Below, in pieces: positions 3,989 through 50,026 of a stretch of DNA of 64,000 nucleotides. The stretch lies in the sequence record OR770614.1. One strand, given 5' to 3'. The position numbers and the translations under genes were made by a program. Below the pieces are notes generated by a model that was not told where the DNA came from, searched no databases, and saw only the letters and a list, made by a program, of their open reading frames with translations. Positions within the stretch are counted from its first letter, which is position 1, and the number at the start of each line of letters is the position of its first letter.

Positions 3989-6985
3989 ATGGAAGATAAA
4001 GATAAAAATCTCTTACAAATAAGTGAAGAGATGAATTCTATTAAGTCTAAGATAAATTCTTTAGTTCAAGATCAAGATAGTATTAAGAATTTATCAGAAG
4101 ATAATAAGAATAAGATTAATGTACTTAATGAAAATCTGGATAATATTGATAAAGAAAATGATAACTTAATAGAAAAATTAAGAAATTTAGATGGTAGTCA
4201 TGATATTGATTTAGATCTTTCTAATTATGTTACACTTGATACACTTAAAACAGAATTAAGAAAATATCAAAAATTAAGTATTGACTATATTGATAGATTA
4301 GCTGAAGGTGGTTGGGATTCTGATATTAAAGGTAATTTAGAAAACCTTAATGGCAGAGTCTCAGCTAATGAAGAATCAATTTCTTCAACTATGTCTAAAG
4401 TTAATAAATATGATTCAACTATTCAATACTTAAGCACTAAGGTTGAACAAACAGCTGAGTCTATTAAGAGTATTGCTACTGATTACACACTTAATGAAAT
4501 TAATCAAAGTATTACTAAATTAGAATCATTTAGAGAACAAACAGCTAGAGTTTTACAAGATACAGTTACTAGAGCTGATATAGATACTATGAATAATAAA
4601 GTAACTGAATTTGAAAGTCAAGTATCTCAGTTTGCAGATTTAATAGAACAGACTGTTTCTAAATCAGAAATTGACGGAATTACTATTGGTGGTAAAAACT
4701 TACTAGAAAATTCATTAGCTATTAAAGGTAATTGGTTATTATACCCTGAAAGTTTATCTTCAACTAAAGAGAATGCTTTAACATTTGGTCAAGATAATAA
4801 CGGTAAGAGTTATTTTACTATTAATACCGATGGAATAGAAGGAGAAGTTGGAACTATAAGCTATAATTCTTTCCCTTTAAAATATAATGAAACTTATACT
4901 ATTTCATTTGATTTTAGATCAGATACATTTAATAGACTTGATCATTGTTACTTCATTGATCCTTCAGGTAATTATACTACACCTATTGCTGAAAAATATT
5001 TAGATATTGATGAAGAATGGCATAGATACTCATTTGTATATAAACAAACTTTAACTGGAAGAAATAGTACAAAATTATTAATTGGTGTAGATACTGATTT
5101 AAATCAATTAAATGGTACATTTGATATATCTAGTGTTAAAGTTGAAAGAGGTAGTGTATCATCTGACTGGACTCCTGCTCCAGAAGACTTTGATAATATG
5201 TTAGAGAATTATAATAAAGATATCAATAATAAAATAGATAATATTGAAGAAAATGCTATTGGGTTAGGTGATACTGTTACTGAAGCTTTTAAAGATGGTA
5301 TTATATCTAATGCAGAAAAAATAGCTATTGAAAAGCAAAAGAATATTATTGATAAAGATAAAAAAGAAATAGATCAAATATTTAATTCATTATATGCAAA
5401 TAAAATGATGACAAATAGTGTTAAAACTGAATTGAAAAATAATTATGATTTATTCAATGAAAAATATAATATATTACTACAAGATATAACTAATACAATT
5501 TCAGATGGAATAGCTACTAAAGAAGAAGTAGCTCAATTTAATACAAATTTCTTAAGATATAATGAAGCTCAATCAAATATTAAATCATCTATTCAAAAGG
5601 CAGTAGATAATATTTCTAATGGCTATGCAGTTGATGAAGCTAGTAAAATCACTGTAGGTGGAATGAACTTAGTAAGTTATGAAAATATTTTAGCTATAGG
5701 ATCTGCAACTCTAAATAAGAATACTTATAAAGAGAACGGTGAAATGAATGTAGCTTTAACTGCTAATGGACAAGGTATTAAATTTAAATTAGATAAAGTG
5801 AGAAATAGACGTGAACATGTATTAGGTTTTAATTTAGAAAAGAAAACTGGTACACTTACAAATGTTGATATTAATATTCCTAATGCTTCTGTAACTTCTT
5901 GTTCTGTTAATGGTAATAAAATTGGAAGTGATTCTAGAAGTATTACATTTAACGATACATCATCATTGACATTTATTGAAGTTGTATTTATACCTAATGA
6001 CAGTTTCACAACTAATACTCCTACAGAAATCGTTATTAATCGTAATGGCACATTCCCATTATCTGTAGATGTAGAAGGGTTAAAAGTGGAAGAAGGTAAT
6101 AAAGCTACTGCTTGGCAACCTTCTATTAAAGACAGTAATGCTAGAATTACTAATATGGAAAGTAGAATTAGTCAGAATGAAAAGAATATAGATTTAAGTG
6201 TAACTAAAGAAACGTACAATGCAGATAAATCTAAAATGGAAAAAATGGGATCAGCTTTATCTATTTTAGCAGATGGTATTAGTATGTCATCTTCATCTAA
6301 TGATAAATTGTCTTCTTTTGATATTGATCCTAATAGCATTAAATTAAAATCTAAAATGGTTGATATTAATGATGGCGATGTAATAATTTCTAATGGTAAA
6401 GCTACTATTAAAGAAGCTTCTATTACTAATTTAATGTCTAAAAATATAGTTGTCCAAACTATGTTAGATGCAATGGGTGAAGTTAAAGGTGGTATTACTA
6501 TTAAACGTCCTGATGGAGGTTACTTAGTATATAATGGTATGCCAAGATTTACTACAGCTTATGTGCGTTCTGAACCAGGTGTGCAAGATTTAATGTCTAA
6601 TGGTACTCCTAGATTTAAGAATGTTGGTAATGCATTTATGTTTAGTGATAAGACTACCGGTAAATACTTCAGACGTGCTATGACAATGTATGGTCAACAT
6701 GAAACTAGATGGTTGCATATAGGTATTTGGTATGCTACTCCTCAATGTGGTATTGATATTAAAGTAGATTCATTTAATGACCAAAATGGAGTATTCTTTG
6801 ATAAAACTGTGTCTATACCTAAAGATACGTCAACTAGTGTAACTAAGACAAAACATAAAGAAATTATTGTAGATATGGGTATTCCAGCACAATCTATAGC
6901 TTCTATAGCAATTCGTGCAAGAGTTAAACCTGGTCAAAAAGGTAATGCTTGGATTCTTAACTCATATGTTTATGGTAGAAACTAA
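3989..6985 (+). CDS. Tail fibre / receptor-binding protein with two carbohydrate-binding-like modules
   Basis: Coiled-coil N-terminus; two modules bounded by GGKNLLENS...KVERGSVSSDWTPAPED and GGMNLVSYEN...KVEEGNKATAWQPSIKD, typical of Firmicutes phage host-specificity tail proteins. Confidence 0.75.
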   Translation: MEDKDKNLLQISEEMNSIKSKINSLVQDQDSIKNLSEDNKNKINVLNENLDNIDKENDNLIEKLRNLDGSHDIDLDLSNYVTLDTLKTELRKYQKLSIDYIDRLAEGGWDSDIKGNLENLNGRVSANEESISSTMSKVNKYDSTIQYLSTKVEQTAESIKSIATDYTLNEINQSITKLESFREQTARVLQDTVTRADIDTMNNKVTEFESQVSQFADLIEQTVSKSEIDGITIGGKNLLENSLAIKGNWLLYPESLSSTKENALTFGQDNNGKSYFTINTDGIEGEVGTISYNSFPLKYNETYTISFDFRSDTFNRLDHCYFIDPSGNYTTPIAEKYLDIDEEWHRYSFVYKQTLTGRNSTKLLIGVDTDLNQLNGTFDISSVKVERGSVSSDWTPAPEDFDNMLENYNKDINNKIDNIEENAIGLGDTVTEAFKDGIISNAEKIAIEKQKNIIDKDKKEIDQIFNSLYANKMMTNSVKTELKNNYDLFNEKYNILLQDITNTISDGIATKEEVAQFNTNFLRYNEAQSNIKSSIQKAVDNISNGYAVDEASKITVGGMNLVSYENILAIGSATLNKNTYKENGEMNVALTANGQGIKFKLDKVRNRREHVLGFNLEKKTGTLTNVDINIPNASVTSCSVNGNKIGSDSRSITFNDTSSLTFIEVVFIPNDSFTTNTPTEIVINRNGTFPLSVDVEGLKVEEGNKATAWQPSIKDSNARITNMESRISQNEKNIDLSVTKETYNADKSKMEKMGSALSILADGISMSSSSNDKLSSFDIDPNSIKLKSKMVDINDGDVIISNGKATIKEASITNLMSKNIVVQTMLDAMGEVKGGITIKRPDGGYLVYNGMPRFTTAYVRSEPGVQDLMSNGTPRFKNVGNAFMFSDKTTGKYFRRAMTMYGQHETRWLHIGIWYATPQCGIDIKVDSFNDQNGVFFDKTVSIPKDTSTSVTKTKHKEIIVDMGIPAQSIASIAIRARVKPGQKGNAWILNSYVYGRN

Positions 6986-6992
6986 TATTTAA

Positions 6993-7472
6993 TTGGAAAG
7001 GAGCTTGAATATTTTGTCAGAAGAAAAGAATGAAGAAAAAATTATGATGGATTTAGCAGTAACAGTGGACAATGAAGGAAATATACTTGATTATGAAACT
7101 TTACAATATGAAGATGAACCTACAACTCTTCATCTAAAAACTAAAATTCCTTTCATTTATCAAGATCAAATTGATAAGTTTTATGTATATATGGAAGGTT
7201 TTAAACCAGTAGTTAAATTAAAAGAAAATGAAACTATTGATGAGAACAGATTAATGTCAGAAGAAGAAGCAGAATCATATTTACAAAGGAAAAAAGAAAG
7301 AGTTAAGCACATGAATATGATGAGCGAAGAATTATCTAAAGGTGTAGATACTAATTTTAGTGGAACTTATGGTGGAGATGATTTCAAAGCAACTGGAGAT
7401 AAGACAAATCCTTTAGATGGTCTTGATGCTTTTGGTAGAAGACAAACTGATAATACTGATTATTTTAGATAA
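6993..7472 (+). CDS. Hypothetical protein, possibly a tail-fibre partner/chaperone
   Basis: 159 aa ORF with TTG start, 7 nt after the tail gene; function inferred from position only. Confidence 0.5.
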   Translation: MERSLNILSEEKNEEKIMMDLAVTVDNEGNILDYETLQYEDEPTTLHLKTKIPFIYQDQIDKFYVYMEGFKPVVKLKENETIDENRLMSEEEAESYLQRKKERVKHMNMMSEELSKGVDTNFSGTYGGDDFKATGDKTNPLDGLDAFGRRQTDNTDYFR

Positions 7473-7488
7473 AAAAAATGCGGTAATA

Positions 7489-7530
7489 ATCCCCTAACCT
7501 TATTAATTTAAGGTTAGGGGATATATTTTT
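7489..7530. terminator. Probably bidirectional terminator between the convergent + and - blocks
   Basis: Perfect 14-bp stem ATCCCCTAACCTTA-TTAATT-TAAGGTTAGGGGAT; T-rich on the right. Confidence 0.8.
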
Positions 7531-7539
7531 AAATTTTAA

Positions 7540-8154
7540 TTATCCAAAGATACGATCTAATGATTCTTCTAATGATTCGTTTGTGCTTTCTTCATCTTCT
7601 GAATCTTCTTCTTCGTCTTCATCTTCTTTAGTAATTTTATCTACATCTTCTTCAGGTTTTTCTTTAGAATCTGGAGATTTTTCTGAATTCATTTTGTTAG
7701 CTTTAGTTGTTTGTTTCTCAACATCCATTTCAGGTTTTTCATTTTCTTCGAATAGACGTTCTAATTCTTCTTCTAATGAATCTTCATCATCTTCAGAATC
7801 TTCATCTTCGTCTTCTTCTAATTCATCATCTTCTTCAGAATCATCTTCTTCAGACTCTTCAACTGAATCTTCATCATCTTCTTCAGAATCATCTTCTTCA
7901 GACTCTTCAACTGAATCTTCATCATCTTCTTCAGAATCATCTTCATCAGCTGATTCAATGATACTTTCGAATTGTTCTTCTACTGAAGTTTCTTCATCAT
8001 CTTCTTCAGATTTTGTTTCAGAATCTTCTTTAGATTTACTTTCGTCTTCATCTGCTGATTCAATGATACTTTCGAATTGTTCTTCAAGAGCTTCTTCCTG
8101 AGCTTGTTCGAAAAGTTGTTCTAACTCTTCTTGAATTGCATTTTGTTTTTCCAT
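7540..8154 (-). CDS. Extremely acidic, low-complexity protein with repeated LEExLExLF-type motifs
   Basis: 204 aa, mostly E/D/S; strong AAGGAG RBS upstream. Confidence 0.75.
   Translation of the reverse strand: MEKQNAIQEELEQLFEQAQEEALEEQFESIIESADEDESKSKEDSETKSEEDDEETSVEEQFESIIESADEDDSEEDDEDSVEESEEDDSEEDDEDSVEESEEDDSEEDDELEEDEDEDSEDDEDSLEEELERLFEENEKPEMDVEKQTTKANKMNSEKSPDSKEKPEEDVDKITKEDEDEEEDSEDEESTNESLEESLDRIFG
7823..7944. repeat. 48-nt tandem repeat (about 2.5 copies) inside the acidic gene
   Basis: tcatcatcttcttcagaatcatcttcttcagactcttcaactgaatct at 7823-7870 and 7871-7918, plus a partial third copy. Confidence 0.9.
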
Positions 8155-27935: not shown

Positions 27936-30900
27936 CTATTCACTAGCTTTAATATCTACATTTTTTGATTTAGGATTATTTAATAAATAAACAGCTATTT
28001 GTGAGTCTTTATTAAGTGAGTAAGTTCTATTAAACAATCCATCATTATATGAAATTAATTGGTTTACTGGATCTTGTACTTTTAATTGTTCGTATTGTTC
28101 TTCTGAAAATAGTGCTATGATATTTAAAGTATCCATTTATCTTAACCTACATTTAATATATAGGATGAGACTATATCTTATGGTTTCCCATTTATATATT
28201 TAGTCGTTGAACCTTATAATTAGGATGCTGATTAGTTTCAAACTGTCCCAGCAATTAATATGATTTATTGAAGGCAATAAATCAATAAATTTTATAATTC
28301 ATTAAAATATTTCCGCTATTCCAAATTCGATAAACACCCGATTGTTTTTTAGGAAAATCTGAGTATTCCATGTTTTCATTAATGTAATTTGGAAAGTATT
28401 CTGGTATAATAGATTTTTCAAATTCATGAACTGAATAAATATTTCTTTTAAAAATTATTTTACATGTAGATTTTAATTCTTTAACATAATTAAAACCAAA
28501 ATCTTTGAAATATTTACCATCAGAATAATCTTTATTTATTATTAAATCTATTGTTTTTATATTGTTTCTTTTGAAATATTTAATTGAATTACTTAATAAT
28601 TTAAATAAACCACCATTTACAATTGTTTTATTACTAAAAGCAAATTTTTCTAATTTAACTTTATTCTTATTTATATAATTATATGACATAATTGCAATTA
28701 TTTCATCATTAATTTTTAATGAAAAATTAATATCATGAGAGGAATTTATATAGGTACTATTATTTTTATAGAAGTTTTTAGCGTCATAATCGTTAATTAT
28801 TTCAAAATTACATTCTCTAGCATTTATTTTCTTTTCTTGAAAATAATCTATAGAATACAATATCCTATTAATTATTAAATCTTTTTTAAACTCGTAATCT
28901 AATGAGTTAATAAAATATATTTCAATATCAAAATTATTTTTAAAAAAATCTTTCTTATGTTTATGATATTCTTTATTTTTCATTTTATCTGAATGATAAT
29001 AGTATCCATTAAATTCAAATCCTATTTTTTTATCTGGAAAGAATAGATCTACTTCATATATTTGATCATTAAAAGAGAATCTTTTGTTATTTAAAATAAT
29101 TCCTTTATATGATTCTTTTATATATTTTATTAATTCAATTTCTTGATTAGATTTAATATTTTTACAAAGAGGACATCTATATCCTTGTTGAAAGTCATTA
29201 ACTCTTACACTATAAATATTACCACATTTTTTATGTTTTATTGGATATTTTTCTTTATTATTGAATTTATAATTTAAATCCAACCATTCATATTCATTAC
29301 CATCTTTAGATTCAGATAATATTTTTATTAAATAATTTTCATCATCTTTATAATAATATTTACCTCTTTTTTTATTTGAACAAAAAGGACATCTTCTTTT
29401 CTTATTTCCCAAAAATAAGCGTGGTTCTACTTTATATTCATTTCCGCATATTTCATGTCTTAATAAAACTTTATCGCTACCATTTTTATTAAAACCTTCT
29501 ATATAAGTATAATCTTTATTTTCTTTTTTAATTTCTTCAAAAAAGTCTTTATCCGATATATTTTTATAATTTCTAGCTTTTTTATTCCCTTCATTTTTAA
29601 AACATTTCGGACATCTTCCTTTTCCTTCATTTAAGAAAATATTACCTTTAGATACTCTATATTCTTCACCACAAATTTTATGTTTTAAAATAAAAGGCTT
29701 TGAAGTTCCCTCATAATTGCTTATTAATTCATAATTATTATTATCTATATTTTTTATTTTGTTTATTACATCTTCTTCTGTTAATTTAGGTGGCATAAAC
29801 TCATCCTTTCAATTAATTATTAAGGAGGTTTATTTAAATTTATTTTTTATTGATAATTTTTACCATCATAGTCTGCACCCATACCAGCAAGTATATTATT
29901 ACTGATACCTACTACTGATGATTCTATATCTTGAATTATATCTTTAATTTTTAATATTTGAACTGAGCTTTCACTAATACTGGGATTTCTATTTAAAATA
30001 ACTCTCATTCCATTTTCAGTTTTATCAACTAGTTCTCTCATATATTTATATACTTTAGGATTAAATGTATCTAATGCTCTGTCTAATATTTCTTCACCTT
30101 TAGCTAAAGGAATATTTTCTGTTACATACATTAAATTTGCTAAGATAGGTTTATATACTTCTAAGAAGATGGTATAATTTAATCTAATTTCATTTAATTT
30201 AAGGTCAGGTGCTGGAACAATTACTGAACGTGCAGAGAAACCAACACGACTACCCATTAGTAATTTACGAATAGTTCCACCTTTACCTTTAATATTCTCA
30301 TTAATTACACGATCACTAATATTAATACTATCATCTTGAATTTTACTTAATAGATTTAATTTTTGTAACTCTACTGAATCATCTGTATAATGTCTATCAA
30401 GTTCTTTAATACTATTACTATGAGCAATTAATAAATTATAATCTTTATTAATTTCAGAATGTCTAAAAGTTTTAGTAGCTTTATTAACTGTAGCAGGTCT
30501 TAATTTAGGACTAAATACAGTTACATAATTTTGGAATAGTAAATCAGATAAATACCATTGTACTACTCTATTGTAATCTTTAGTTTTACGTTTTTCACGT
30601 TTAACTTCTTCTTTAAGAATTTTTAAGAAATTCTTTCTAAATTCAATTAAACCAATATAAGAGTTATGATCATCTTCAGGTTCAATTACATTACCATTTT
30701 CATCAATAGGTTTTTCAGAACTAATAATTTCTTGGAATCTTTTATTACCAATTAATTTTTTAACACGTTCATAACCTAACGGATTTAAAATATAATTATT
30801 ACCTAAATCTACAATAGCTTCATTAGTAATATTATCTGCTTCTGAATCAGGACCGAAGATTTTCTCACTGAAGATACCATCTTCAGTGAAATCACCTTTC

Positions 30901-46985: not shown

Positions 46986-47216
46986 TTATCCTGCATCATA
47001 CGTGTTATCACCATTGATTGAAGTAGTTGGCTCTACTTTTTCCCACTCTACATCTGATTTAAATTTAGGTCGAAAATCTCCATCGCCATCTGCAAAAATT
47101 GAAACACTGCCAGACGAACCTACTATTCCAAGACATTCCATTTCGTTCAACATTGACATAAAACAATCAATCCATCTTTCTTCCATTTCAACTTCAATTG
47201 TAAATTTCTTTTTCAT
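46986..47216 (-). CDS. Small hypothetical protein with a DGDGD motif
   Basis: MEERWIDCF...FADGDGDFRPKF; AAGGAG RBS. Confidence 0.65.
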   Translation of the reverse strand: MKKKFTIEVEMEERWIDCFMSMLNEMECLGIVGSSGSVSIFADGDGDFRPKFKSDVEWEKVEPTTSINGDNTYDAG

Positions 47217-47280
47217 AATAATACTCCTTTATTAAAAATAAAAGTAATGATGAAATTAATCATCATTACTTTTATTATAT

Positions 47281-49943
47281 TTATTTTGAATCTTCTTTAA
47301 TTTCTTTAACTAGATTATTTATTTCTCTAGGTGATAAATCTTTAATATCATCTACATTTTCGAATTTTTCCATTAAGAACTCTAATTGATCTGGAGAAAG
47401 ATCCATAATTGAATGAAGATCTTCTTCTCCTGCTTTATTATAATCAATACTAACATTTAGTGGACTAAAGTAAGCATTAAGTACTTTAGTGTTATTATTT
47501 TGATATCTCTTTTCAAATGAAGTATTTAATTTAAACGGATTACCTGTATATAACTCTACTAATAGACGTTTTCTTAAGTCTTCATTATTAGAGTACATAT
47601 TAGTTAATTCATTAATAGCTTTGATAGATCCACCGATCATCATGTTAGTTGTTTCCATCTCACCGCAGTTATTCTAAATATTATTATTTAGCTAGACTAT
47701 ATCATTACCATTTAAGGTAGAATATATTTAGTCGTTGAACACTAATTAAAGTGATGCCGATTAGTTTAATACTCTTCTCAGCAATTAATATTCTTTACAT
47801 TTATACATTTCTATATAACGGAGCCTTTATTTGACTCTGAGAGGATTGTTGTTTATTCTTGATCTATAGAACTTAGAATCGGGTGTTCGTGTGGGAATAC
47901 CACTGTAATTATTAAAGTCAATTGATTTTGCACTTAATTTCCCACTAGGCTCGTGTTTTAACTTCAGGTGATACAAATCTCCAACCATAAATGTTCTATT
48001 ACTAACATCTAGTCGGTTTTTCTTAATATTGTATTTATTGAATAAGTATCTGATTTGTTCAGATTCAATATTATCAAAGAAAGGTGCTTGATGAAGTACA
48101 ATACCATTTTTAATAAAGTCTTCAATAGCTTCTTTAGTCTCTTCATTATCTAAACTATCAAATAATTTTACATAATTATCATAAGATACTTTATCTGCAT
48201 CTTTGATATATTCTAATAAATATTCTTTCTGCTTATTAACATCATCTAACTTACTAATACGATGTCTAATAACGCTTGAAATATGATTTAATTCTAATTC
48301 AACTAATGCTGAAGGATTTCCTCTATTAATAATACCCATATTATTATGAATTAAGTCTACTCTTTTCTTAATAGGGGTTTTATTATCTTTTGTGAAATCT
48401 TCTCCATCAAATTCAGTAATCATTGGCATTTCATTATCTGGAACAATCTTAGCTACTACACCTTTTCCACCGTACCTTGTGCTTATTTTTGCATTTGTGT
48501 TAATGAACTTCATATACTTTACTAAGAAGATCAGACTATATCATTACCTTCATATAAGGTAGAATATATTTAGTCGTTGAACACTATTTATAGTGATGCT
48601 GATTAATTTTATAATTCTCAGCAATTAATATTCTTTACATATAAATTTTCATTCATAAGGGACCTATTAATTTGATCCGTGCACTAAAGGTTTCTTCTCT
48701 AATACTTTAACTCTAAATACGATTTTATCAAATTGATTTCCATCATATACAAGTTTAGCATTAGGATCAATGTAGCTCTTAAATCTATTATAAGTTCTAA
48801 TTAAATCATTACTAAATTTCTTCTTGCGTACAATATCATCAGTAACAGTTACAAATGTACGATAGAAGTGTTCTAAATCTTTGATATATTTTAAGAATTG
48901 CTCTGAGTACTTTTCATTCTCTAATTTTTCAATTGATTCATTATTAAGTACATCAATATCAATAATTTTACCATGTACCTTGTATGCATTATCACTTTCA
49001 ACAATTTTAGATAACATATCATTTTTAAATTTATGAATTAATTCGTCATAGTTTAGTCGTCTTGTTGCTGTTAATACACCATCTTTAATTTCTTCTCCAA
49101 CATCTGGAAATGCTTTATAACTTTCTTCATCACCATAAATATTTAAAGGAATATCATTTGTATTTATAGTTACATTAACTACATGAACGAAATAACTTGA
49201 CATTTTCTCAGCTAATGATTCTGATACAACAATACCATCTTCCTATAGGTTATAATTAATAAAATTATACCATAGACTATATCATTACCGTTTAAGGTAG
49301 AATATATTTAGTCGTTGAACACTGTTTTTAGTGATGCTGATTAATTTAATAACATCTCAGCAATTAATATTCTTTACATACATAAATTTCTTTATGCAGG
49401 AACAAAGTTAATTTTATTCGTAAATCCTTTATCTGGTAAAAATACTGAAGTAGCGTTTGTACCATATTGGAAATTATTTGATTCTTCATCATAGTTTTGA
49501 TCTTTATAAAGTACTTCATTTTTATCAACAGTACTACCAATTTCTAAAGAATCAATTTTTTCATTTTGATATTTATTACCGAACTTCTCAGCTAAATGAT
49601 TAGCTTCTTCTCTAATAATAATATCATACTCATCATTATCTTTATACTTCACTAAATAGTATTTTACATATTTATTCTTTTCAAATATAAAAATAACTTC
49701 AAAATCTCTTTCAGCTTTCTTATAACCAGTTGAATATTTACCCACTTGATTCTCAAAACCAGTTTGAATTAATGGAGGTTCAGCTTCAGTTAATTGAATA
49801 CATTGACCTATATGTGAAGTGAACATTTGTGATCTATTACCATTAGTTCTATTAACATTAGGCATTAATAGTAGTTCCGATAAAAATTCATGACTTTTCT
49901 TATCTTCAATCTCTTGCATTCTTTGTGTTCTTTCCTTTGTCAT
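47281..49943 (-). CDS. Multisubunit RNA polymerase beta-like subunit, C-terminal part, spliced from 4 exons: 49943-49416, 49242-48675, 48491-47834, 47665-47281; 712 aa
   Basis: NGNRSQMFTSHIGQ motif; splicing restores GFTN/EDGIVVSES, HGS/KISTRYGGKGVV and NPLRV/GEME; exons sum to 2139 nt in frame. Confidence 0.92.
47666..47833 (-). mobile_element. Group I mini-intron 3 (168 nt, no ORF)
   Basis: Exon ...AGAGU / intron ends ...UAACUG; IGS GCUC; P2 with GAAA loop; P3-P9 pairings present. Confidence 0.9.
48492..48674 (-). mobile_element. Group I mini-intron 2 (183 nt, no ORF)
   Basis: Exon ...GGAU / intron ends ...CAAAUG; IGS GUCC; same core as introns 1 and 3. Confidence 0.9.
49243..49415 (-). 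mobile_element. Group I mini-intron 1 (173 nt, no ORF)
   Basis: Exon ...GAAU / intron ends ...CUAUAG; IGS GUUC; P7 GACUA/UAGUC; P3 GAAUAU/AUAUUC. Confidence 0.9.
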
Positions 49944-50010
49944 CCTATAAACACTCTCCCTGTAATATAAAAGATAATGTGAAATAATATTCTCTTAATA
50001 TTCCACATTT

Positions 50011-50026
50011 TTATAATATATATTTA
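50011..50026 (-). promoter_or_regulatory. Early promoter motif upstream of the RNAP beta C-terminal gene
   Basis: TAAATATATATTATAA, exact consensus. Confidence 0.65.

Follow-up and report, generated by a model that had tools for sequence, protein, structure and literature searches.

The window considered here is a 64,000-nucleotide (nt) stretch of sequence record OR770614.1, the 273,701-bp genome of the Staphylococcus jumbo phage vB_StaM_PB50 (PB50); window positions are obtained by subtracting 62000 from those of the record, to which region 47200–50000 is 100% identical. PB50 is an AR9-like jumbo phage within the MarsHill/S6 clade; these phages encode two multisubunit RNA polymerases (RNAPs), and the gene of interest codes for the C-terminal part of the non-virion RNAP beta subunit (the beta-C gene). 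It consists of four exons separated by three inserts, I1, I2, and I3 (Table 1). In the PB50 record the locus appears as four fragment coding sequences (CDS) that start at internal ATGs, one of them inside I2, and no introns are annotated. The related phages DC4, S6, and PALS_2 carry the same gene intact, encoding 713 amino acids (aa).

The four exons join into 2139 nt, corresponding to 712 codons and a stop codon with no internal stops, and the joined protein is 83% identical to its DC4, S6, and PALS_2 counterparts and aligns with them without a gap at any of the three junctions. At the DNA level, the flanking sequences in S6 and DC4 abut exactly at the points where the inserts are removed; the 712-aa frame that a preliminary description of this DNA had assembled from the letters alone is thus borne out by exact empty sites. 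The junctions rebuild the motifs FTN|EDGIVVSE, HGS|KISTRYGGKG, and LRV|GEME. Exon 2 matches residues 175–362 of 7S00_C, the chain of the AR9 non-virion RNAP in its solved structure (E=3.7e-34), and exon 3 matches the consecutive segment, residues 365–573 (E=1e-31), as well as positions 1065–1248 of Escherichia coli beta and the Pfam family Rpb2_6 (E=4e-4). Because of the matches to 7S00_C and E. coli beta, both the identity of the gene and the placement of the inserts in motifs of the catalytic centre are sound, and the earlier proposal that their removal restores three conserved beta motifs agrees with these matches and with the junction sequences.

One could suppose that nothing is spliced at this locus, and that each of the four PB50 ORFs (open reading frames) yields its own polypeptide, the four assembling into a beta subunit that is split still further; the GenBank record does list four CDS, each named 'non-viral RNA polymerase beta subunit', and it is known that the beta and beta' subunits of jumbo phages are made as separate N- and C-terminal proteins (PMC7598289). 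We regard this as very improbable, however, as the breaks lie inside the most conserved motifs of a gene that relatives keep uninterrupted, and two of the three fall within codons. Moreover, the annotated fragments, in starting at internal ATGs, lose EDGIVVSESLAEK and RVGE, one of them reads out of an intron tail, and the inserts contain the covarying group I core described below.

All three inserts are preceded by a U and end with a G (the omega-G), as had been proposed. The sequence permits only one placement of I1, while I2 could slide by up to 4 nt and I3 by 1 nt; the slid alternatives violate the U/G rule, and only the placement given in Table 1, as dictated by empty sites and reading frame, obeys it. 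In each P1, four exon bases pair with the guide, a U·G followed by three Watson-Crick pairs, with the guide G at intron position 10–13. Minimum-energy folding of subdomains yields P1 with its U·G, a 7-bp P2 capped by GAAA, and the P9 hairpins in all three, and folding of whole introns gives P4 (6 bp), a P5 stub (3–4 bp with a 4–5 nt loop), P6 (4–5 bp), P7 (5 bp), and P8 (3–5 bp), so that the helices listed previously, apart from P3 and including the stub P5, reappear. Reading from the sequence, the upstream frame meets an in-frame stop 3–8 codons into each insert, as is usual past the 5' splice site of phage group I introns. No endonuclease ORF of the sort expected of homing introns is present in I1–I3, nor indeed any ORF, in line with the preliminary description, and inserts of 168–183 nt offer no room for one. 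The three have a G+C content of 24–26% and are 91–93% identical to each other over a core of about 107 nt, and 79–81% overall; the window contains three occurrences of a 28-nt core motif, against 0 expected by chance.

Comparison with the Rfam group I intron model (RF00028, Intron_gpI) in E-value mode gives end-to-end matches for I3 (44.9 bits, E=1.3e-9), I2 (42.3 bits, E=7.2e-9), and I1 (20.1 bits, E=0.03). The alignments include the conserved GUUCAACGACUAAA and GAUAUAGUCU elements, and the core elements AAUUGCUGA, AAUCAGCAUC, GUUCAACGACUAAAU, and GAUAUAGUCU, aligned to the RF00028 consensus across model positions 1–253, are intact in all three; these correspond to the P, Q, R, and S elements of the older literature. 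The P7 sequence allows an A-U closure, a bulged C, and then a G-C pair (CAACGACUA / UAGUCU), at positions that are invariant across the family alignment. Just one nucleotide separates P3' (…AUAUUCU) from P8 (ACC…), and therefore the P7.1/P7.2 extension that lies between these elements in subgroup IA introns of the T4 td and Twort type is absent. As for the docking features of subgroup IC3, loop L2 is a GNRA tetraloop wherever P2 has been identified, L9 is not GNRA in I1–I3, and P5 is too short to serve as a receptor.

A covariance model, R1, was built for the core from P3 to P7' (P3-P4-P6-P8; 106 positions), and was confined to it because MAFFT, when given the introns in full, put the 5' splice site and P9 out of register. 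I1, I2, and I3 score 134.5, 121.9, and 130.7 bits respectively, and searching the 273.7-kb PB50 genome with R1 recovers 22 copies, whereas there are none in the complete S6 genome. The PB50 copies all interrupt essential genes, namely both sets of beta and beta' RNAP genes, both DNA polymerase genes, gyrB, terL, nrdE, and the prohead protease gene; scores of 122–135 bits are confined to the beta-C gene, and the next-best copy has 75 bits. At its gathering thresholds, Rfam detects none of these 22 copies, either in the window or in the rest of the genome, and reports three tRNAs only. These tRNA matches are clustered, and we note that one of them (PB50 record ~205027–205129, minus strand) is 103 nt long against a 71-position model, which suggests a long variable arm or an insertion.

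For covariation we aligned 75 family cores (62 of them distinct) from PB50, five relatives, and metagenomic contigs. Over the 62 distinct sequences, pairing holds in 96.7% of cells, and changes on both sides are seen in 17 of the 25 base pairs, counts that are biased towards the model since the alignment was fitted to its structure; the compensated pairs are nevertheless varied, and the signal is not subtle. The covariation score is 0.552, compared to 0.137 for shuffled alignments (0 of 500 reach the observed value) and 0.03–0.07 when partners are slid. All pairs of P3, P6, and P8 covary, as do two of the six in P4, so that these four helices of the proposed architecture are recovered by covariation; P5, with its 3–4 bp, lies outside the covariation model. 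The guide sequence shifts with each exon context. By their boundaries, architecture, family membership, and covariation, and by the intron-less alleles in relatives, I1–I3 are group I introns.

The boundaries of 14 ORF-less family members in PB50 were determined with S6 as the empty-site reference, together with scoring, frame, and protein checks. Their lengths are 142, 142, 149, 150, 165, 168, 171, 173, 177, 179, 180, 180, 183, and 183 nt, and 12 of the 14 have a U·G at the 5' splice site; one has a C opposite an A, and one is anomalous. A P2 was identified by eye in eight (I1–I3 and five paralogues), which is 8 of the 10 that are 165 nt or longer, and all eight are capped by a GNRA loop (GAAA, GUAA, GCAA, or GUGA); the 165-nt member is without P2, and the P2 of one 180-nt member could not be assigned. 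As read from their sequences, the 142–150-nt members run straight from P1 into P3 without a P2, and two of them lack the P9 hairpin. The two smallest lie in the DNA polymerase exonuclease gene and the virion RNAP beta' gene, and RF00028 scores one of them (PB50 record 254521–254662) at 27.8 bits. The 149-nt member, in the virion RNAP beta' gene, has a C before its 5' splice site, with C·A replacing the U·G, and retains GGC as the Gly codon in DFDGD.

Table 1. Exons and introns of the PB50 beta-C gene, helices of I1–I3, and other members of the intron family. Positions are those of the window unless the PB50 record or another stretch is named.
Feature	Position	Strand	Remarks
Exon 1, non-virion RNAP beta C-terminal gene	49416..49943	-	aa 1-176, ends GFTN; ATG at 49943; aligns with S6, DC4, PALS_2
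Intron I1	49243..49415	-	173 nt; phase 0; terminal G 49243; empty site in S6/DC4
I1 helices	P1 49420-49416/49403-49400; P2 (GAAA loop) 49397-49380; P3 49373-49367/49305-49299; P4 49362-49357/49340-49335; P5 stub 49353-49344; P6 49333-49320; P7 49313-49309/49279-49275; P8 49298-49287; P9 49271-49248		
Exon 2	48675..49242	-	EDGIVVSE ... LVHG plus first base of Ser codon; 7S00_C match
Intron I2	48492..48674	-	183 nt; phase 1; terminal G 48492; empty site
I2 helices	P1 48679-48675/48663-48660; P2 (GAAA) 48657-48640; P3 48634-48628/48567-48561; P4 48623-48618/48602-48597; P5 48616-48605; P6 48595-48582; P7 48575-48571/48538-48534; P8 (5 bp) 48560-48546; P9 48529-48508		
Exon 3	47834..48491	-	KISTRYGGKG ... 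NPLR plus two bases of Val codon; 7S00_C and E. coli beta matches
Intron I3	47666..47833	-	168 nt; phase 2; terminal G 47666; empty site
I3 helices	P1 47838-47834/47824-47821; P2 (GAAA) 47818-47801; P3 47794-47788/47725-47719; P4 47783-47778/47760-47755; P5 stub 47773-47763; P6 47753-47740; P7 47733-47729/47699-47695; P8 47718-47707; P9 47691-47674		
Exon 4	47281..47665	-	GEMETTNMM ... through stop codon; joined frame and S6/DC4/PALS_2 alignment
Fourth window member	28134..29861	-	1728 nt; non-virion RNAP beta' gene, splits catalytic GADYDG|D; R1 66.2 bits
149-nt ORF-less member	PB50 record 254789-254937	-	Virion RNAP beta' gene, splits DFDG|D
Two 142-nt members	PB50 record 238153-238294, 254521-254662		No P2, no clear P9 hairpin; smallest seen
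terL intron	Stretch L010 34270-34440	-	PB50 terL; same in Machias

The family also includes ORF-bearing members of 0.7–1.7 kb, with HNH or other endonuclease ORFs, in nrdE and in the DNA polymerase, terL, virion RNAP (vRNAP) beta, and non-virion RNAP (nvRNAP) beta' genes. The last of these is the fourth family member in the window, for which the boundaries come from the S6 empty site, with a U at position -1 and a terminal G. Its 504-aa endonuclease ORF (29796–28282) lies upstream of the ribozyme core (28270–28168); the record labels the product 'homing endonuclease', and Pfam shows the treble-clef zinc finger DUF4379 only. The 149-nt intron of the virion beta' gene occupies the same motif position as this 1728-nt intron in the non-virion gene.

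Searching with I3 by blastn gives matches at 129 places, spread over seven records of Staphylococcus phages of which six are jumbo phages (PB50, 20; AH12, 29; Machias, 28; LY01, 31; MarsHill, 9; Madawaska, 11), and gives no match in S6, DC4, or PALS_2. Orthologous introns are found in five other viable phages, and the orthologues of I1–I3 in AH12 and Machias are 96–100% conserved. The number of cores within the beta-C gene varies (AH12, 6–7; Machias, 5–6; LY01, 4 in tandem; MarsHill, 3; Madawaska, 2), and the sites partly differ. In LY01 (stretch L008, 3520–4290) the four tandem mini-introns interrupt a coding stretch of 72 nt, so that the micro-exons measure only about 12, 45, and 19 nt. The beta-C gene of AR9, checked as a possible experimentally spliced orthologue, is uninterrupted.

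The seventh record, that of the Twortvirinae phage Golestan-100, is the sole blastn match outside the jumbo phages; it is an intergenic fragment with no Rfam match, and we set it aside as uninformative. The fragment (stretch L144, 1440–1550) lies downstream of the tail-tube gene with no split gene around it, and has the core motifs AAUCAGCAUC, GUUCAACGACUA, and UAUAGUCU; it may be an intron relic. We also note that the S6 record has ORF-bearing insertions of ~1.2–1.9 kb at 6908–8072 and 191670–193586, at the prohead-protease and vRNAP-beta sites that family introns occupy in PB50, and these may be a different type of intron or endonuclease.

Beyond cultivated phages, the exact pattern GTTCAACGACTAAAT-N10-40-GATATAGTCT is present in at least 119 stretches of IMG/VR viral contigs. 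R1 confirms 62 cores in 80 of the listed IMG/VR pattern loci, and the cores are often 210–250 nt apart; among the matches listed, the shortest contig is about 29 kb and the longest 401 kb, and contigs of 217–401 kb hold the majority. Judged by sequence, many contigs of uncultivated jumbo phages carry cores of the family. In a set of 185,579 bacterial and archaeal species, each represented by a single genome, the pattern matches only two contigs of metagenome-assembled genomes (MAGs). Contigs of giant-virus MAGs also carry the P7 pattern; R1 gave no match among the loci tested, and they are not counted as members of the family.

Taking these observations together, we consider it very likely that I1–I3 are ORF-less miniaturised group I introns of a single family that are spliced in the canonical manner, and that their splicing is needed for the non-virion RNAP beta subunit. 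Splicing in vivo would follow from the fact that the host genes are essential and the six intron-carrying phages viable, and the splicing chemistry from membership of the group I family. The beta-C gene would give one pre-mRNA in which each intron folds into a group I core. P1 would be formed by the last 4–5 exon bases and the internal guide, with the cut site marked by the U·G pair; P4, P5, and P6 would be shrunk to 6, 3–4, and 4–5 bp, and P3 and P7 would make the usual pseudoknot, with P7 expected to hold the guanosine pocket and P8 and P9 forming short hairpins. P2, with its GNRA cap, probably stabilises the fold by docking on a second helix. Free guanosine would then attack after the U, the terminal G would enter the same pocket, and the freed 5' exon would attack the 3' splice site. 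Three such events would rebuild three active-site motifs of RNAP beta, and because all three are needed, production of the non-virion RNAP would depend on splicing. We note too that TATATTAT at 50013–50020 (minus strand), ~70 nt upstream of the gene's ATG, fits the early-promoter consensus of AR9 and MarsHill as given by Korn et al. (bioRxiv 10.1101/2020.12.14.422802), which suggests that the beta-C gene may be transcribed early by the virion RNAP.

Several observations weigh against this interpretation. A P10 is convincing only in I1, where the 3' exon GAAG can form 4 bp with CUUU just 5' of the guide, as read by eye. P7, although 98% paired, is invariant, and covariation is consequently uninformative on this helix; the bias of the fitted alignment has been mentioned. 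Folded whole, the introns reach minimum free energies (MFEs) of only -29 to -31 kcal/mol; the z-scores, -1.8 to -2.3, are modest, and the helices are short and A+U-rich, so that autonomous folding may be marginal. The terL intron presents a further difficulty, in that its family-like sites (…GAGU|AAAAAGG… and …AUAAAUG|ACC) remove 170 nt and shift the frame; the frame is kept only with G|U…G|A or U|A…A|C, so that for this intron the U/G rule and an intact frame are incompatible. A sequencing error can be discounted, because the junction sequences are identical in the independently sequenced Machias, and Korn et al. (bioRxiv 10.1101/2020.12.14.422802) were likewise unable to reconstruct TerL; the splice rules are thus not fully understood for this family.

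Finally, I1–I3 all score below the Rfam gathering cut-off of 50 bits, and the search with a group I covariance model for which the preliminary description had called gives the E values stated above together with scores beneath a threshold that is the curators' and not a biological criterion. The shortfall is due to deleted peripheral segments and not to mismatches in the core: the missing bits correspond to P6, where 38 consensus positions are reduced to 12 nt, to P8, where 51 are reduced to 2 nt, and to P5, which is nearly gone. These sub-threshold scores are also the one observation in favor of supposing that the inserts are decayed, inactive intron relics and the PB50 gene a pseudogene. That we find hardly credible, because this group of phages needs its non-virion RNAP and does not use the host polymerase (PMC7598289), all of the exons are open and 83% identical to intact homologues, the same family splits about a dozen other essential genes, and the introns are so strongly conserved in AH12 and Machias.

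A more serious alternative, to which we give somewhat less than even weight, is that the introns are group I by descent but too reduced to fold alone, such that a trans-acting factor is needed in the cell; candidates would be a phage or host RNA chaperone, a maturase-like protein (for example the endonuclease of the larger members), or the translating ribosome. The minimal P4-P6, the absence of the peripheral P5abc and P7.1/7.2, the low G+C content, and the weak MFEs with modest z-scores all point this way; a shared cofactor would be economical for 22 related introns in one genome, and some phage group I introns splice in vivo and not in vitro (PMC11878797). MarsHill-like phages grow at 30 °C and poorly at 37 °C (Korn et al.), and a link of this behavior to the introns is speculative. 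On the other hand, the analysis turned up no candidate cofactor, the elements of the catalytic core and the joining regions are all intact and strongly conserved, and engineered group I ribozymes without P4-P6 reportedly stay active.

With canonical group I splicing as the preferred explanation, the distribution of guides offers some clues to how the family has spread. Five members with the guide GUCG follow CGAU in five different genes, and their 3' exons are mutually dissimilar; the family has probably spread inside the genome to sites that match a 4–6 nt guide. Such a pattern fits guide-directed reverse splicing, or the survival or selection of insertions able to form P1, and does not look like endonuclease homing. 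A tie between intron spread and the reverse transcriptase (RT) of PB50 was considered and set aside, since S6 has a 1503-nt ORF at the position syntenic with the PB50 RT gene (orthology assumed), yet has no introns of this family.

With about 22 introns in polymerase, terminase, gyrase, and protease genes, gene expression in PB50 would hinge on ribozyme folding, a dependence that is possibly sensitive to temperature or to a factor. There are consequences for annotation as well. Because the family is invisible at the Rfam gathering threshold, essential genes are listed as strings of fragment CDS in PB50, AH12, and LY01; the beta-C gene of AH12 and LY01 is annotated in similar fragments to those in PB50, and about a dozen other essential genes are affected too. 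A family-specific model would repair annotations of this type. The paper on DC4 notes that Rfam found no introns, which is correct for that phage, and the same check would miss the PB50 introns too, as the family lies under the gathering threshold.

That introns exist in the beta-C gene is already known, and the earlier remark that they have been reported in jumbo-phage RNAP genes is substantiated by MarsHill and Machias, in which this same gene is annotated with 4 and 6 exons respectively. The introns of MarsHill, Madawaska, and Machias were predicted by Korn et al. (bioRxiv 10.1101/2020.12.14.422802) solely by aligning proteins, and that preprint gives no intron class, structure, length, or family relationship. 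Those in MarsHill and Machias are in the same gene and the same clade, and are in part orthologues of I1–I3. What is new is that they belong to one miniaturised group I family, invisible at the Rfam threshold, with ~22 copies in each genome, the shortest of them 142 nt long. Lavysh and colleagues are said to have predicted introns in the Bacillus phage AR9 in 2016.

Like the introns of T4 td, nrdB, and nrdD and those of the Bastillevirinae, I1–I3 are group I introns in essential genes, located at conserved motifs and with early in-frame stops; the T4 and Bastillevirinae introns usually bear endonucleases, unlike I1–I3. Leaving out coding sequence, Bastillevirinae introns measure 350 ± 108 nt (PMC11878797), about twice the size of the PB50 family. 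The presence of several group I introns in one Staphylococcus phage gene has a precedent in the self-splicing introns of Twort orf142, and the R/S core motifs are similar. Landthaler and Shub reportedly described three group I introns in that gene in 1999. The Twort introns are ~250 nt or more and have the IA-type P7.1/P7.2 extension, and a crystal structure of the Twort ribozyme exists; this extension is missing from I1–I3, with their single nucleotide between P3' and P8.

Curated GISSD alignments contain IA3 introns of 205–374 nt and IB4 introns of 203–392 nt (PMC6125680), and two papers on databases state no minimum length. At 142–183 nt the ORF-less members fall below the ~203–205 nt lower bound of these alignments, and the near-minimal size claimed for I1–I3 holds to that extent; within their own genome they are not extreme, given the members of 142–150 nt. 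A literature search of incomplete coverage found no description of natural group I introns of 142–183 nt or of the PB50 family. We suggest, tentatively and as something we think rather more doubtful than probable, that these are the smallest natural group I ribozymes yet seen (142–183 nt), splicing themselves without protein, present in 20–30 copies per genome through guide-directed reverse splicing, leaving micro-exons down to ~12 nt, and in the smallest cases composed of P1, P3, P4, a stub P5, P6, P7, and P8 only. If they are active alone, the lower size limit of natural group I ribozymes would move to 142–183 nt, P2, P9, and an extended P5 would be shown to be dispensable in nature, and the introns would be convenient for structural work and as compact permuted-intron tools for RNA circularisation.

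Minimal ribozymes have been engineered as well, and Ikawa, Shiraishi, and Inoue reportedly found in 2000 that group I ribozymes based on the P3-P9 domain catalyse with P4-P6 reduced or absent. Such engineered ribozymes require ions or polyamines at high concentration; the phage introns, by contrast, are natural and have retained a small P4-P6. Among natural introns, the 205-nt Azoarcus intron is G+C-rich and very stable, interrupts the anticodon loop of a tRNA, and has a full P5 acting as the receptor for L9. The phage introns resemble it in being compact and ORF-less, with a single GNRA-capped P2, no P5abc or P7.1/7.2, short P6, P8, and P9, and the same core elements. They differ from it in being 22–63 nt shorter, with ~25% G+C and a P5 of 3–4 bp, and in residing in protein-coding genes, and the smallest of them do without P2 and P9 altogether.

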